NCBI GenBank assembly: GCA_000708835.1
Contig: DF237187.1
Location: 1-64,000 of the forward strand
Source: Klebsormidium nitens
Lineage: Eukaryota; Plantae; Klebsormidiophyceae
Direction: 5' to 3'
DNA: 64,000 nt
Positions 1,889-9,374 of the stretch are shown in pieces. Below the pieces are notes generated by a model. It saw only the letters and a program-made list of their open reading frames with translations. It was not told where the DNA came from and ran no database searches. Position numbers and translations under genes: made by a program. Position 1 is the first letter of the stretch. Every line of letters begins with the position of its first letter.

Positions 1889-4800
1889 ATGGCCTCCGCT
1901 TCAACATGCCTGAGGACGACAGCCCTGTCTCAGGTAGGCCACATCTCCGCTTCAAGGCCATCCAAGTCGGCGCTGAGTGCTGCTTTATGTTGGACGAGTG
2001 CTGCTTTCTGACAACAGTTAATAGCAAGATGCAATGCCTGTCAGCTTTGCAGCTTTGACCACTTCATTGCAGTTGGGAACATAGAAAATGAGGGTATGGA
2101 TATAGAATGCCGCATTGTGTGACCAGCTCAAAAATACGGTTCCTTTCTTCCTTACTGTGCTCGAATTTGAAGTGCTTCTGGACTCCAATAGATTCTGGAA
2201 AAGCATTATTAGTTCTGTCAATTATTCCTACCCGTGTAAGAATACGGTGGGATTATGTAGCGAGAGAGAATCACCAACTCGCACACTTAGTGTTTAGAGT
2301 TCGTTGTTGCAAGATGAGCAGGCCTACACAGCAATCTTGAGACAGCATGCTAGCGCCCCTGGAAAGTGAAGATAATTGTATCCGAGAGGCACATTGTGTC
2401 TAAAATTTGTCATCTGAAAACTGTTTTAAAGCAATGGCATGCTGTAGCTCTTGGTGATACCATACTCCTAGTCTTCTTCGCATCCTGTTGGATATTGCAG
2501 ATTAAGAATCACAGCAGAGAGCAACCATGGTAGCCTGCAAATTTAGAGAATGGGTCAGTGAAGTGAACACCTTTGGAACTCAGCAACGAAGCAGCCTCAT
2601 GGCATTGCTTACCGTAGATCCCAGGCTAGGGACAGCATCTCTTGGCGTCCGTATAGAAGGATGTGCCTTCTTGGCTGCTCCGAAGAGCAAGTCTGACTAT
2701 GTCTCTTCACTTGCAGGGCTTGGCTGCTGGTATGGGTGCTGAGAGGGAATGCACTGTGCAGAGGTAAGGAACGTGTGTCCTGCATGGAGGGTACCTGAAC
2801 TTTTTCTGTCAATCTGTTATGCCAAACTATTACCTTGACAGTAGTGCGCCTCTTTCCATCAAAGGCTGATGAAGGTCATCGTTGCCAGGAGGAACTTTCT
2901 GCAAGTGTGTCGAATGTGGTGCACATGCGGCAGCAAAAGATTGGAAGGAAAACTTCACACCAGGATCGCCTCATCTTGTCCTGCATTGGATCTGCAAAGA
3001 CATTGTTCTTAGAGCATGTTCCACGCTGCTGTGCAGGTCTGCATTCTTTGGCTCCCGGTCAGCCACCAATAATGCTCTTCGGCAAAAGGTGTCTGAAGGG
3101 CGCGCTCGCGTGACCTGCGAATCACAGAGGCCCTCGAGGAGCAGGTGGGCCTCTCTCAAGGAAGAGCCCAAGACACAAAAGCCCAAGACGGACAGATGGG
3201 GGGGCCTCGGCACCGACCAGTCAGACGATCAGCAGGACATCACCAGGGGCCGCGGGATGGTTGACTCTGTTTTCCAGGGCGCGAGCGGCCTCGGCGGAAC
3301 ACAGAATGCCATCATGAGCAGCCATGACTATATCAGCACCGCGCAGAAAACGTAAGGGACAGTCCCTACAGATGTGCATGCTGTGGCCCGCCTGAGAGCA
3401 ATGCTATGGTTTTTGCTTCCCGGTACTTGCGGATCCACTTCACCCTTCAAAACCATGATTTACAATCATTCTCCTCAATGCTCCATCTGCTCAAAATCTG
3501 ATTAAGACGTTGAAGACGTTTAAGCTGCAAAACAGGGATATGTGTGTGTTGTCAGCGAAGCAAGTGTACGATGCTCCGCTGTGTTTAGAGAAGCCAACTG
3601 GAGAATGAACGCTTATTACATCATCGACATCACTCTGCCGTGCAGTTTGAGCAACATCAGCGCTGAGGGTTACTACATCTCCCCCACCTTCATGGACAAG
3701 CTGGTGATCCACATCACAAAGAACTTCCTCAAGCTCCCCAACATCAAGGTGAGCACTGCAGCTGCGCTGCAAGCTTCACGCTTTTAGCATGATCGTTAGC
3801 TTGTCATCCACATTCAAGGAGGGGAATGTACATCGCAGTGCGCCAAGCCTGAGCACCCCTTCCATAGTCGAAGTTAGGGTTTCTTTGCATGAATGAAAAA
3901 CTGCCTGTGTTTTATGAAAGCATGCTGTCACAGTTTTTGCACCACTCACTCGTGCCAGTGTTGAAATTCATTGTGCTCTTCATAAGTGCAAGAGGCGCTC
4001 CATGAGTCCGGTTCTCAATTCCCAATTCTGCTGCTCTCCCTCGTGGCAGGTTCCTCTCATTCTCGGAGTGTGGGGTGGTAAGGGTCAGGGCAAGTCCTTC
4101 CAGGCTGAGCTGGTCTTCTCCATGTTGGGAATCAAGTAAGTGGATCAGCACAATTTCACGCTTGTGCTGAAGCAGTGATGCCTTGGTTGCATATTTCTGG
4201 CTAGAGACTGCCTTCATTTCTGACGTAATGTTGAAGCTGCTCTGAATGCATTTGAGGCAGAACGCTTCGCCAGCGAGTTCCTGATGCAGATTGTTTCACA
4301 GTTTGATGAGACTTGCACTTTCTGTAAGAAGAACTGCTCCGCTGATGTATCTGCTCTCAATGTAGAGGAGTTTCTGGTGGTAAAACTCTTAAGTTTTGAA
4401 TTAGGCGGGCTCATGTTGCTGCTCCACCCTGTTTTGCAGCCCCATTGTCATGTCTGCTGGAGAGCTGGAGTCTGGAAATGCCGGAGAGCCCGCCAAGCTT
4501 ATCAGGCAAAGGTACCGCGAGGCCTCTGACATCATCAAAAAGGGCAAGATGTGCGCCCTCTTCATCAACGATCTTGATGCGGGTAAGTTCTGTCCCGATT
4601 GTTTGAAGGACACTGAGGTTGCTGCATCTAAGCAAAGTGGCAAATGAGTCGGATCTTTCATTTCAAAGCCATTTCTGCATTCTCAAAACGTTCGAAAAGG
4701 TTGTCAACAGGCAGTCATACTTATTACAGCTATCGGCATTGCACTTATTCGTCTAAGCTTGAAACTCCGATCGAAGCGTTTGGATTCAGGCTGCTGTTGT

Positions 4801-7252
4801 CCGCCAGTAAGCCAGACTTTCCCAGCCCTTTCTTGTCCTCTTCCTTGTGGACATCTGAACAATGTGCCCTTCTAGTTCTGTTTCTATTGCAGCAGTGCAG
4901 CTCGCCCCTGCTACCAATTTGTGAACAGCAGGCGGCTCCATCGCAAATCAGTAACCCCAGAGGAATGCAGGAGACCTGACCCAACTTTTCAAATAGAGCT
5001 GACTGTTGTTTCTGAATTCAGGTGCGGGTCGCATGGGTGGCACCACCCAGTACACCGTCAACAACCAGATGGTGAACGCCACCCTCATGAACATTGCTGA
5101 TAACCCCACCAACGTCCAGCTGCCGGGTGTCTACAACAAGGAGGAGAACCCCCGCGTGCCCGTCATTGTGACTGGTGAGTGGTGCAAAATCCACACCCTG
5201 GGATCGCTCTAGCTCGCCTACCACTGGGTCCCTCCTTTACCATTTGTGCTGCTTGGCTGCTTCATATCGTTTGGAGGGGTTGCAAGCTTAGCCACTCCTA
5301 ATTTGGCAGCTTTTGCTCTGGCTTCTTACTTTGACAAGTTCGGATAGAGCATCCACTAAGCAATTCCTTAGGGACAAGGTATATTGCTTGAAGAGGGTTC
5401 TTGTTGTTTGTAACCAAGATGGGCTGGCATTCGCTGAACGACGCTCCAGTTCAGTTCCGCCGCCAGCACTGGTCAAAGATCACATTTTTCTGCCACATCA
5501 ACTAATGCAGTAAGCCTTGCAGCCTTCTCTATCGGGTCATTCGATACACACCCGTGCTTTTACTCCTCCCAAAGAGGCTTTCCTCCAATGCCATTGTCTT
5601 TGCGCCTCATGCCGTACCTCCCCTTGCAGGTAACGATTTCTCCACCCTGTATGCCCCCCTCATCCGTGATGGCCGTATGGAGAAGTTCTACTGGGCCCCC
5701 ACCCGTGAGGACCGGATCGGTGTGTGCACCGGTATCTTCAAGGAGGACAAGATCAACCTTGGCGACATCCAGACCCTGGTCGATGCCTTCCCTGGCCAGT
5801 CCATCGACTTCTTCGGCGCCCTGCGGTCTCGCGTTTACGACGACCTCGTCCGTGACTGGGTCAAGAACGTGAGCACTCGAGCTCTTTTCAACATCTCACT
5901 TGAGTGGCTCACAAGTGCCATACTTGTGTGCTAGTCATGGTTCCTGGTTGCTTGGGAGGATAAGCCGCTGAGGAAGAAAGTGGTGCAAAGTGCTGCTTGC
6001 CCGACCTCATCATTGTGCCTGACCTCGTGCAATTCTTTGCCAACAATATATACCAGCGCTTCTGCAAAACCGAAAATGCTGCTGTTCCTTCTTTCATCTC
6101 TGCTGGCTTCCGGCTCAAATCTGCACTCGCTGCTGTTCATTTATTCTCTCTTGTGGCTCAATTCTGCACTTGTTTTCATTTCATACGTGCCGGCCTCCCG
6201 CTCAAAATTGCCCTCGTTTCTGGCTCAACCGTGCTGGTTTCCCGCTCGTATTTGAACCTTCTCGGTACTGCTGAAGTAGTTCCGGCAGGGTGCGTCTCCA
6301 AGCAGGTGGTCAATTCAGCCTCAAGGGCCGAACAAAACTTCCCACCAGGACAAGTCGTTGCATCTGACCTCTGGACATTCTCCACTGCAGGTCGGCTACA
6401 CGAACCTAGGAAAGTCGCTGGTCAACTCCAAGAACGGCCCGCCCACGTTCGAGCAGCCCCGGATGACCCTCGATATCCTGCTTGCGTACGGCAACAAGCT
6501 GGTCGAGGAGCAGGAGAACGTCAAGCGGGTGCAGTTCGCCGAGGAGTACCTCTCCGGCGCTGCCCTGGGTGATGCCAATGCCGACGCCATCGCATCTGGC
6601 AGCTTCTACGGTGCGCCTCCTTGATCTGGTTGATTTTGAAAGTTCTAGTCCTAATGGAGATTGCCCCACTGAAGTCAACAGGAGGGTCGCTTGTCGTTTG
6701 CTCGTAAGAAGTGCCGGCAGCGAAACCCGTTCCTGACGAGCACGTCATGTTCACGGTGCGCAACTCTGTGGTTCAGTGGGTGTAGACTTGGTTCAATTTG
6801 TAATCGCCCTGAAGATTGGGGGTAAAAGTGCTACTAGGCCGAAAAGCTGCCCTTTGTTGGTGGCGCTTTTATTCTTCTTAACTGCTCCAAGGCTTGTTTC
6901 AACAAGCCAGGTCTCAAACCAGTCTGTCATGCGTTCCGTTTCCTCATCAACGGGGGCCAAGCAATGAACCTACGAGGCTGGGGGCAGCGATGCAACCGGT
7001 ATTAGCTCTAGCCCTTAAGTAGTTGGGGTTTTATTTAGGCTAACTTGGAATGAAAACGACGTTGAAGGATGCAGCCAGATCGAACTCTCTTCTAATGTTG
7101 GCGTCCGGGTTTTTGCAGCTGGAAAGGCAGCACAGCAGAACCCTCCTAAGGTGAAGGAGGGGTGCACGGACCCTATTAGCACGAACTTCGACCCCACAGC
7201 CAGGAGCGATGATGGCTCGTGTGAGTACGACTTTAACACCTGGCCCGCATAA
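1889..7252 (+). CDS. RCA: Rubisco activase (chloroplast AAA+), redox-type alpha isoform; 5' transit-peptide exons uncertain
   Basis: Phase-consistent exons 3037-3351, 3646-3748, 4050-4135, 4440-4582, 5022-5174, 5630-5868, 6391-6610, 7119-7252. Motifs: [29 protein letters not shown], Walker [68 protein letters not shown], and C-terminal [18 protein letters not shown]. Candidate first exon 1889-1933 (acc[21 protein letters not shown]|GT); how it joins the 3037 exon is unresolved. Confidence 0.95.
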
Positions 7253-8290
7253 GCCAGGTGATTCACTTGTTATCCCGTTGGTTTGGCGTCAGTTTCGGGA
7301 ACGGTACTGGTGTTGTAACGTTAGGTAGGGGAGTCGGTAACTACCCTGGCTGCAGTGCTGTTTTGCAGAGATCCCTCATAGGTTTCATCAGCTTTCTGGC
7401 GCTTCAGGAAACTTACGAGATTCTTTCTCAAGAGACATTCTGATGAAGGATCGTGGTATGGTGTTTTGGTATGATACGGAGTTCCAAACCTTGACTTTGA
7501 TGTCTCTGAAAGACTGGTTCTTTTGAAGAGAACCCTCATCCTCCAATGCGTGCATTCATGTACACATGGCCAAGGTTCTTGGTCAGGCTGATGTAAAACG
7601 TCTAGCTGTGGCAATGAAAGTTGCAAATCACCGCACATGTACCAGAACAACTTTAAAAGACAAAATTGGTGGTAAGTTTCCGATCGAACCCTCTTCTAAT
7701 ATCGCATTGGGGTTCTCTGCAGCTAAAAAGGCAGCGAAGCAGAATTCGACTTCAAAGCGCTCTGCAAAGGCAGTTCAGCCGAAGCCTGCTCCGGTGCCTG
7801 AGCAGAAGAAGGCTCCTGTGTCTGAGCCGGAGCCTGCTTCGTTCTTTGCGTCGGAGCCTGCTTCGTTCTTTGCATCGGAGCCTGCTCCGTCGTTCTTTGA
7901 GTCGGCGCCTGCTCCGGCTGCTTCGTTCTTTGAGGCGGCGCCTGCTCCGGCGGAGCCTCAGGGATGCACAGACCCTAAGGCCTCTAACTACGATCCCTTC
8001 GCCTCGAACGATGATGGCACTTGTGAGTACGACATGTCTACCTGGCCAGCATAAGCCAAAGCTTGAGTTGTTGTTGCGTTCGTTTGGTAACGATTCAAGT
8101 GTTTTAACATTACGGTAGGCAGGTTGGTGACTACCCTTGCTGCAATTCTGTTTTGAGGAATCTCTCCATTAGATTACCAGCTTTCCAGCGCTTCAGGACT
8201 ACCCGATGATCATGAGAACTATTGTCAATAGACATTTCGAAGGATGAAGATCGTCGTATGGTATACGTACGGGTTGCCAATCGTGAATGT
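7081..8290 (+). repeat. Degenerate tandem duplication of the RCA last intron end, terminal exon and 3' UTR (units about 7081-7520 and 7685-8290)
   Basis: Shared blocks: cgaac(t/c)ctcttctaat before both acceptors; acctggcc(c/a)gcataagcca at both stops; UTR blocks ggtagg..gt.ggt.actaccct.gctgca.t.ctgtttt and cagcttt...gcgcttcagga; atgaag(g)atcgt.gtatgg. Confidence 0.9.
7723..8054 (+). CDS. RCA: Second, alternative terminal exon of Rubisco activase (long Pro/Ala-rich SFF-repeat extension plus two-Cys motif)
   Basis: Acceptor TCTCTGCAG|CT at 7722/7723 has the same phase as the 7119 exon. Open to TAA at 8052-8054, encoding AKKAAKQNS...EPASFFAS..x4..QGCTDPKASNYDPFASNDDGTCEYDMSTWPA. Confidence 0.75.
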
Positions 8291-9374
8291 TAAGTGCACG
8301 CATACGTGTCATGACACTTCTTGAAGAAAACACTCATTGCTTGCATGCCTAATGGAAAGTATCGCGTGCTTTCATGTTAGTACATCTCGCCAATCCTGGC
8401 CGGCCAGGCTGGCACATGTGACACGTCTATTTATGCCACGGCATGCACGACTCGAAAATTGCAGATCACTGTCCCGGTCCATACGTGTTGCAATCGTAAT
8501 GCTGATTTAAAGTTCATTCACTGGCTATGCAGCAGGTTTAGTGTTGACCTCGAGCGAGAGTCTCTCGCCAATTACTGCCGCGTCTGATCGAGTGACCTCT
8601 AGGGCCTGATGCTGCACTACATGTGCCGGTTGTATGGAAAATGAATGGTGGTGCTCGACTGGATCGGATACGGTTATAAACGAGTGGCCTCTCTGGATCA
8701 CTGGCCCATGCCTTTGAATGATGGCACTTCCGACGCGATCAACCATGGTTTTGAGAATACCGGTACAACAACTCGGTCACAAGCACTGTAACATATAATC
8801 GAATGCAAGTCGAGTTCATGGACGTTAGTACGTCTATATACATGTACCTAATCAAAGTCATCAAGACCGAGTCCACTTCAAAGCGGCGGCCATGCAAATT
8901 TCAGATGTTTCGGTCACTGATAAGCACGCATGCCAAACAAGTGCGACGGGCCCAGCCACTGCGCATCCAAACGTAGTACTACTAGATAGACGGTAAGTAC
9001 ATGGCCGCGATTTAGAAGCACACTCACAATCCTGCGCATATCATGCATGTCATAAATACGCTCAAGAGTGGGAAGGCCCGGTCCCGTGCCGCGTATCCCG
9101 GCTTGGGGGCTAGTTTCACATGTGCACGTGTCTGCATAGGTACCACCTATGCAGTCATGATACTTAACCATAACCCGGTTAGCTTACTGAGGCCAATGCT
9201 CCGCAAAAGTTCAGAGGACACTTGAGTCACGGCGGACTTGATTGCAAGCCTTCACTTGACACTTTGTCGGGCAGCAGTTGACTCACGCACACATATGATG
9301 TCATCAGAAGCTTTGACCCGTTGACCCAACCGACCGGATCGGTCGATCTTTGTGGTCTTCAAAGCAGTAGGTCA

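Follow-up and report, generated by a model that had tools for sequence, protein, structure and literature searches.

We analysed 64,000 nucleotides of Klebsormidium nitens (assembly GCA_000708835.1, contig DF237187.1, positions 1 to 64,000; hereafter, the window), whose + strand carries an intron-rich eukaryotic gene for Rubisco activase (Rca) between positions 1889 and 8290. The last coding exon of this gene, together with its acceptor and its 3′ untranslated region (3′UTR), is tandemly duplicated, with copy A beginning at ~7078 and copy B at ~7682. In the interpretation that we consider probable, the duplication gave rise to tail exons used in series, exon A followed by exon B, where two donors of exon A compete for the acceptor of exon B at 7723 and the long protein form is the major product. 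The joints 7220→7723 and 7257→7723 show that both copies are spliced, which confirms the proposal of a first-pass annotation of the window that exon B is transcribed and belongs to Rca mRNA.

The terminal exon of Rca is tandemly duplicated

At the DNA level, copies A and B are 70–80% identical, which upholds the terminal-exon duplication recognized in the first-pass annotation. Identity is 80% between 7078–7140 and 7682–7744, which comprise the last ~40 nt of the intron and the start of the exon, and 71% between 7158–7409 and 7960–8198, which comprise a two-cysteine module and the 3′UTR; in a MAFFT alignment, weaker similarity continues to ~7560 in copy A and ~8350 in copy B. Tail A (7119–7252) consists of 43 full codons and a stop (TAA, 7250–7252), tail B (7723–8054) of 109 full codons and a stop (8052–8054). 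Each tail encodes in its DNA two cysteines 19 positions apart, Cys466 and Cys485 in tail A, Cys566 and Cys585 in tail B. The stop of each copy is followed by a homologous 3′UTR, with 7253–7560 homologous to the 3′UTR of copy B. Copy B further contains an insert of ~215 bp (7745–7959) built largely of 24- and 33-bp tandem repeats. Its translation is rich in Pro, Ala and Glu and includes four SFF motifs (DNA ~7777–7951).

The common part of the gene ends at the donor 6610/6611 (TAC G/GTGCGC). The acceptors of the two copies read ...TTTTTGCAG/CT at 7118/7119 and ...TCTCTGCAG/CT at 7722/7723, both in phase 1. Donor, acceptors, phase, stops, cysteine spacing and homologous 3′UTRs all lie where the first-pass annotation had placed them.

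Two donors of exon A feed one acceptor

We derived splice junctions from assembled RNA contigs (unitigs). In the RNA search, four studies of a single organism contributed 14 runs that contain 77–98% of the 31-mers (runs of other organisms share 20–40%), and one run from each of the four studies was placed on positions 3000–8600. The contigs skip every upstream intron at GT..AG; therefore, the runs are RNA.

All four runs contain the joint 6610→7119 (depth 2779, 1129, 1585 and 957) as well as the joint 7220→7723 (1460, 628, 633 and 418), while the joint 7257→7723 was found at depths of 111, 254, 163 and 0; all three joints are GT..AG. A third path leaves exon A unspliced, represented by contig 7228–7749 at depths of 72, 83 and 17 and by 7191–7734 at 17.8 (X11). 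Acceptor 7723 is thus fed by two donors that lie in or just after exon A, 7220/7221 (T/GTGAGT) and 7257/7258 (CAG/GTGATT), the first of which is formed by the Cys-Glu-Tyr codons (TGT GAG TAC) of module A and fits the donor consensus of the gene itself. Since no other donor leads into exon B, exon A serves as either an internal exon or a coding terminal exon. With frames checked, the joints 7220→7723 and 7257→7723 and the unspliced stretch 7228–7749 identify exon A as a composite internal/terminal exon with alternative 5′ splice sites. Of the three routes out of exon A, the one from 7220 takes 89, 65, 78 and 96% in the respective runs, as roughly estimated from junction-specific unitig depths, and the 7220→7723 junction is also present in the public protein GAQ85488.1.

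The first-pass annotation had proposed a different use of the same sites, in which exons A and B are mutually exclusive terminal exons that are both joined to donor 6610 and retention of the last common intron adds a beta-like isoform. Both acceptors read CAG/CT in phase 1, so that 6610→7723 would be in frame, some contigs retain the intron, and contigs can miss rare isoforms. The joint 6610→7723 was, however, found in none of the four runs of assembled contigs, compared with four of four for 6610→7119; acceptor 7723 is fed from 7220 and 7257, and the public gene model places a shortened exon A (A′) upstream of exon B. The first-pass annotation itself had named the lack of reads for this junction as grounds against its proposal. 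We therefore consider mutually exclusive use very improbable, although a minor 6610→7723 form is possible because contigs drop rare variants. Contigs retaining intron 6611–7118 (e.g., 6581–7147) have depths of 16.8, 14.5, 4.7 and 3.6, or 0.3–1.3% of the spliced junction, a pre-mRNA level. The frame of the retained intron reads G-A-P-P-stop (stop 6622–6624), and the resulting FYGAPP-stop form is indistinguishable from pre-mRNA. Of the up to three isoforms proposed for the gene, more than one alpha-type tail is therefore recovered, while the short read-through form is not supported.

Tandem repeats carry a general risk in genome assemblies, and the tandem copy might be an assembly artefact or exon B part of a separate downstream transcript. 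The probability of either is close to nil. The copies are only 70–80% identical and therefore do not represent collapsed or mis-expanded reads, RNA contigs of independent studies run contiguously across 7228–7749 and carry the A-to-B junctions, and no contig starts between A and B.

Downstream of acceptor 7723, contigs extend at high depth over 7723–8287 and cover exon B contiguously to ~8260–8290. RNA contigs end between 8253 and 8287, adapter sequence follows 8262 in X9, and depth falls after ~8290. Over the old 3′UTR of copy A, coverage stays at the low depth of the unspliced contigs; hence, few transcripts end at the upstream poly(A) site.

From these data, the region can be divided as follows, all features lying on the + strand. 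The last common intron (6611–7118, 508 nt, donor G/GTGCGC) is defined by the joint 6610→7119 in four runs. The internal form of exon A (7119–7220, 102 nt, phase 1 at both ends), defined by the joint 7220→7723 in four runs and by GAQ85488.1, encodes module A with its first cysteine, Cys466, and without the closing one. The extension of exon A (7221–7257), delimited by translation, the joint 7257→7723 and the splice-site sequences, comprises the rest of the Cys485 codon, EYDFNTWPA, the stop TAA at 7250–7252 and 5 nt. The interval 7258–7722, assigned from low contig depth and homology, holds the old copy A 3′UTR, the duplicated intron tail and the acceptor of copy B, and serves as intron for both exon A donors. 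Coding exon B (7723–8054), supported by translation, repeats and RNA contigs, completes the junction codon Ser485 (T + CT) and continues with 109 codons. The copy B 3′UTR (8055–8290, end approximate), delimited by contig ends, forms the 3′ end of essentially all transcripts.

The GTGAGT hexamer occurs a second time at 8023–8028, within the Cys-Glu-Tyr codons of exon B. No joint from 8023 was seen in the RNA contigs, presumably because no acceptor follows.

Protein isoforms encoded by the gene

Splicing from 7220 joins T to CT and creates a serine codon that replaces Cys485, drops the last nine residues of tail A and lets the frame run into exon B. The resulting protein is identical to GAQ85488.1 (...SDDGS-S-KKAAKQ..., 594 aa), in which Cys466 is orphaned and Cys566 and Cys585 lie in the terminal module. 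Exon B contributes, in this order, a basic stretch, the Pro/Ala/Glu-rich spacer with four SFF repeats and the complete two-cysteine module GCTDPKASNYDPFASNDDGTCEYDMSTWPA (Cys566, Cys585). This 594-aa long form dominates in all four studies, with a roughly estimated ~65–96% of the transcript paths out of exon A.

The donor 7257/7258 lies 5 nt past the stop of exon A, so that the product is a 494-aa canonical alpha form and exon B becomes 3′UTR; the unspliced A–B mRNAs likewise encode the 494-aa canonical alpha form. An mRNA with its stop very near the last junction is not a typical target of nonsense-mediated decay, and the 7257-spliced mRNA, whose stop is too close to the junction, would not be expected to be one.

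Both isoforms therefore terminate in a single complete two-cysteine module. The sequence hallmark of alpha-type Rca, two cysteines 19 residues apart, is found in both tails, and the major mRNA keeps both cysteines in tail B only. The claim that both exons keep two cysteines consequently applies to the DNA of each copy and fails for the major mRNA, where splicing removes the second cysteine of tail A. The ...SGSFYG of the first-pass annotation needs a small correction: the residue at the spliced junction is Ala (G + CT), and the final G exists only in the unspliced reading. A spliced mRNA for a beta form without the C-terminal extension (CTE), or an alternative donor giving a beta end, was not found in the contigs of the four runs, in which a rare form could go unseen. 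At an appreciable level, the K. nitens gene yields no beta-type short form.

In the AlphaFold model of GAQ85488.1 (P0271), the predicted local distance difference test score (pLDDT) is below 50 over most of residues 480–582, from which the spacer is taken to be disordered; the two-cysteine modules reach only ~62–70.

Gene structure and identity

The common part of Rca (1889–6610) comprises nine coding-sequence exons, defined by mapping of GAQ85488.1, RNA contigs and Pfam: exons 1–5 at 1889–1933, 2717–2763, 3037–3351, 3646–3748 and 4050–4135, and exons 6–9 at 4440–4582, 5022–5174, 5630–5868 and 6391–6610. Together, they encode residues 1–450 and the first base of codon 451. From 3352 onwards, the introns are joined at GT..AG in RNA contigs of the four studies.

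The assignment of the gene to Rca, already made in the first-pass annotation, is substantiated by GAQ85488.1 (594 aa, named Rca in GenBank), which matches the window exon for exon, and by the Rubisco activase AAA helical domain PF21228, which matches the translations of 5632–5868 (7e-23) and 6391–6609 (7e-9). With an AAA+ core, the Rca-specific helical domain and plant-like sequence along the whole body, the protein belongs to the green-type Rca. P0271 is 66–74% identical to Rca of land plants and zygnematophytes, 82% to the Rca of a Klebsormidium-like alga (L001/P0151) and 95% to that of K. subtile, and the Walker A motif GGKGQGKS is invariant in P0271 and the Rca proteins compared.

Tails of related Rca proteins

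For comparison, we used the 120 Rca proteins listed from a search with the full-length open reading frame L001:150–1907. Among these 120 proteins, 115 carry one CTE module, four carry none and a single one carries four. The best named match, the K. subtile protein P0155 (491 aa), falls into one cluster with GAQ85488.1. With 95% identity to P0271, it has a CTE of the tail A type at its end; the short form therefore represents the ancestral architecture.

L001 is a metatranscriptome contig (Ga0315919_1003083) that, with P0151 and P0152, derives from a Klebsormidium-like alga, 87% identical in one exon. Its Rca (586 aa) has a single CTE and a ~95-residue Pro/Ala-rich spacer with aromatic repeats such as AKQAAPVAEKPRESSF. 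This spacer is placed before the ...SYFAG junction, upstream of ...SYFAGFAAQQNPPPLKEGCTDP, a site other than that of the SFF spacer of K. nitens. Two spacers at different sites may mean that a tethered tail was selected for convergently among these algae. The L001 protein also has an extra ...SDPDSFKDVPSFW after the module.

RefSeq models of Selaginella moellendorffii (671–961 aa, predicted) contain four complete tandem CTE units with one exon each, and every unit ends with a copy of the upstream ...YG/gt donor (L023:3154–3911, GL377568.1; P0156, P0273, P0276, P0279). Selaginella is thus an independent precedent for the serial use of amplified CTE exons, arising from a different duplication unit. 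The longer of these predicted models run on into a cyclophilin domain (PF00160), which may be a genuine fusion or a read-through in the gene model. The chlorophyte-like metagenome Rca loci L003–L009 end without any CTE, in agreement with the literature.

A model of serial tail exons

The tandem duplication, ~600 bp in length, would have begun ~40 nt before the end of the final intron and taken in the acceptor, the terminal exon for the alpha-type two-cysteine CTE, and the 3′UTR. The copied acceptor at 7723 is served by two competing 5′ splice sites within the first copy, and the competition between donors 7220 and 7257 decides between the 594-aa and the 494-aa protein. From N- to C-terminus, the long form consists of the AAA+ body, an unclosable module A′ with the orphan Cys466, a disordered spacer of ~77 residues with four SFF repeats, and the intact module B. 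In this form, module A′ is probably a segment of a ~120-residue disordered linker, as the structure prediction suggests, and its Cys466 would be available for mixed disulfides.

By analogy with alpha Rca of land plants, both isoforms would be regulated by thioredoxin: a disulfide in the terminal module, reducible by thioredoxin, would tune the sensitivity to ADP. The tether that carries this switch would be ~100 residues longer in the long form than in the short one, and the spacer may serve some additional purpose. In green algae, Rca is classically found in the pyrenoid matrix, and Klebsormidium has pyrenoids; for this reason, the spacer might act as a Rubisco or pyrenoid tether.

Several points weigh against this model of competing donors and serial exons. 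The RNA evidence consists of assembled contigs, whose depths are rough and in which rare junctions such as 6610→7723 may be missed. The three downstream paths sum to ~50–85% of the depth of 6610→7119, and no single contig phases a whole isoform. Over the 30 codons shared by modules A and B, dS is ~0.60 and dN/dS ~0.45, a value that is not significant with so few sites. Finally, the isoforms are known from RNA contigs and the gene model, and redox regulation, tether effects and a role of the SFF spacer are putative.

The same junctions could also arise if inclusion of exon B were a tolerated by-product of a lineage-specific duplication, in which a cryptic donor in a cysteine codon meets a copied acceptor; the long form would then add no function or be a partly impaired Rca, and the minor tail A form would be the functional regulator. 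Donor 7221 indeed exists only through the coding sequence TGT GAG TAC, the same hexamer is unused at 8023 in exon B, the dN/dS of 0.45 is inconclusive, the spacer consists of young-looking tandem repeats, and the reference transcript of K. subtile shows tail A only. We nevertheless regard a by-product as unlikely, for the following reasons: (i) in four independent studies, most of the mRNA is of the long form; (ii) in exon B, a 330-nt frame has stayed open and no consensus residue of the module has been lost, despite ~30% divergence of the UTR; (iii) L001, P0151 and P0152 have their ~95-residue aromatic-repeat spacer before a single CTE and at another position, which suggests selection for a tethered tail; and (iv) Selaginella keeps four units.

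A two-cysteine mini-domain family

We searched tail B exhaustively with phmmer (HMMER) and obtained 5935 proteins at E<=1e-3, all of which match query residues ~75–105. The best 150 of these 5935 are long proteins that match the two-cysteine module only, with up to 54 matched stretches each. Together, these 150 proteins hold 2110 units with the consensus G-C-T-D-P-x-A-x-N-Y-[DN]-P-x-A-x-x-D-D-G-S-C-x-Y. The unit spans ~23 residues, with 18 residues between the cysteines, and is repeated up to 43–54 times in secreted proteins of Bacteroidota/Flavobacteriales. Matches in genomes fall mostly into Flavobacteriales and Bacteroidia metagenome-assembled genomes. Of five match proteins scanned against Pfam, two carry sorting domains of the type IX secretion system (T9SS), confirmed in NCBIfam.

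Both Rca tails (window 7160–7228 and 7962–8030) fit the unit at every conserved position, with identities of up to 17/23, and tail A is 70% identical over 23 residues to the bacterial protein P0142 (BLASTP). A profile built from bacterial units alone recovers Rca tails at ~40 bits (median of 128 Rca-family proteins; i-E ~1e-5 at Z=1.8e9), so that consensus and Rca-free profile both place the tails in a GCTDP...DDGSC.Y mini-domain family. With this profile, module B scores 41.8 bits and the truncated A′ 29.8 bits; module B keeps every CTE consensus position seen in the 115 plant and algal Rca tails and the 2110 bacterial modules. Judged from 23 residues of similarity, common descent of the Rca CTE and the bacterial mini-domain is likely.

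Scans of Rca tails and bacterial repeat proteins found no Pfam or NCBIfam model for the module; the only match was to PsaN, below threshold. A bacterial two-unit segment is predicted to fold at a pLDDT of 96.4. The bacterial profile matches one copy in structures of human and mouse MPEG1/perforin-2 (6u2j residues 331–353, 6sb1 residues 4–25); the best PDB match in Foldseek is likewise the MPEG1 segment, a weak one (E 0.85), and phmmer of the bacterial array P0081 against PDB gave no match. Neighbours in the ESM Atlas include Bacteroidota, phage-labelled, haptophyte and Thermoplasmatota clusters. Among searchable papers, the motif string occurs only as Rca peptides, and others may have noticed it earlier.

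The sub-threshold matches to PsaN (PF05479, profile positions ~72–112) come from the bacterial arrays P0081, P0117, P0142 and P0076, and the module profile weakly matches chains of photosystem I subunit N (PDB 2wsc_N, E 0.095). By sequence, photosystem I subunit N may hold a degenerate copy of the two-cysteine unit.

A combined scenario, to which we give a real but less than even chance, is that the alpha-Rca tail is a captured copy of this widespread disulfide mini-domain, gained as a separate phase-1 terminal exon near the base of Klebsormidium and land plants, in a manner comparable to the origin of the GapB tail from CP12. Because it is a self-contained exon, tandem amplification could have occurred on two or more separate occasions (giving two copies in K. 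nitens, four in Selaginella), and the K. nitens long form would carry an intact switch on a disordered SFF-repeat tether, with possible coupling of redox control to Rubisco or the pyrenoid.

Comparison with known systems

In Arabidopsis, the CTE has two cysteines 19 residues apart, the thioredoxin-f target through which ADP sensitivity is set (Zhang and Portis 1999, as cited in PMC9951593 and PMC4436894), and Arabidopsis and spinach make alpha and beta Rca by selecting different 5′ splice sites at the last intron (Werneke et al. 1989, as cited in PMC9951593). According to reviews citing Nagarajan and Gill 2018, the CTE and the alternative splicing that goes with it arose in charophytes. As in Arabidopsis and spinach, one K. 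nitens gene yields C-terminal isoforms through competing 5′ splice sites beside the two-cysteine exon, the CTE occupies its own terminal exon after ...FY(G), and the extension is clearly orthologous. Unlike in these plants, both products are alpha-type with no beta form above the pre-mRNA level, and the donors lie in or just after the CTE exon and lead to a second CTE exon, with one splice deleting a regulatory cysteine.

Klebsormidium belongs to the earliest-diverging streptophyte lineage known with an alpha-type Rca redox tail. In place of the classical regulated long and unregulated short isoforms, the K. nitens gene yields two tailed forms, and Rca redox control may have begun as 'alpha only', with tether length or the number of switch modules as the variable. 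The first-pass annotation had described the arrangement as unfamiliar; we found no description of the duplicated tails of K. nitens in the searchable literature, where one may exist from earlier work, and the major 7220→7723 junction is already publicly annotated in GAQ85488.1.

The Selaginella genes LOC9655422 and LOC9640310 (XP_024521386, XP_024521390, XP_024521393, XP_024521402 and others) resemble K. nitens in that the CTE unit has been multiplied and the copies are spliced in series. They differ in that each unit keeps both cysteines, the SFF spacer is absent and the models continue into the cyclophilin domain; their units end with a copy of the upstream (L/I)YG/gt donor, and the duplicated unit therefore included the donor. 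The four-unit array presents the tail exon as an evolutionarily mobile cassette.

GapB of chloroplast GAPDH has a redox-sensitive C-terminal extension derived from CP12 (Petersen et al. 2006, as cited in PMC3838966 and PMC4436894). Like the Rca tail, this is a short, conditionally disordered two-cysteine tail of streptophyte age that places a Calvin-cycle enzyme under thioredoxin control and has a recognizable donor family. Unlike the Rca tail, it stems from the C-terminal half of CP12, not from the GCTDP...DDGSC.Y family, and arose by gene duplication and fusion instead of a duplicated terminal exon spliced in series. The bacterial modules differ from those of Rca in being extracellular, in forming arrays of up to 43–54 units and in being presumably permanently oxidized, whereas Rca has one or two modules at the C-terminus of a stromal AAA+ enzyme, where they act as a reversible redox switch in land plants. 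The mini-domain family offers a hypothesis for both origin and mechanism of the switch, a domain that would fold only when oxidized.

The small-subunit-like domain of the cyanobacterial Rca-like protein has a role in recruitment to Rubisco condensates. It is located at the C-terminus (Lechno-Yossef et al. 2020, via PMC9951593), and the K. nitens long form shares with this protein an extra C-terminal module on a flexible linker, a functional resemblance that is speculative. The K. nitens module itself is unrelated to the cyanobacterial domain, and any Rubisco-binding role of its spacer or module would be speculative.

Two further variants of the tail were observed. P0160 and P0161 (Logan/EukProt transcripts) carry a ~30-residue Arg/Ser- and RGG-rich tail after the CTE (…RSRSRSPVRGLRGGRGRGRR), a lineage-specific add-on. 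The Mesotaenium endlicherianum gene model ME000219S03345 (P0252) skips part of the sequence directly after ...QGTFH and lacks the first CTE cysteine, reflecting either a mis-predicted splice site or a one-cysteine tail.

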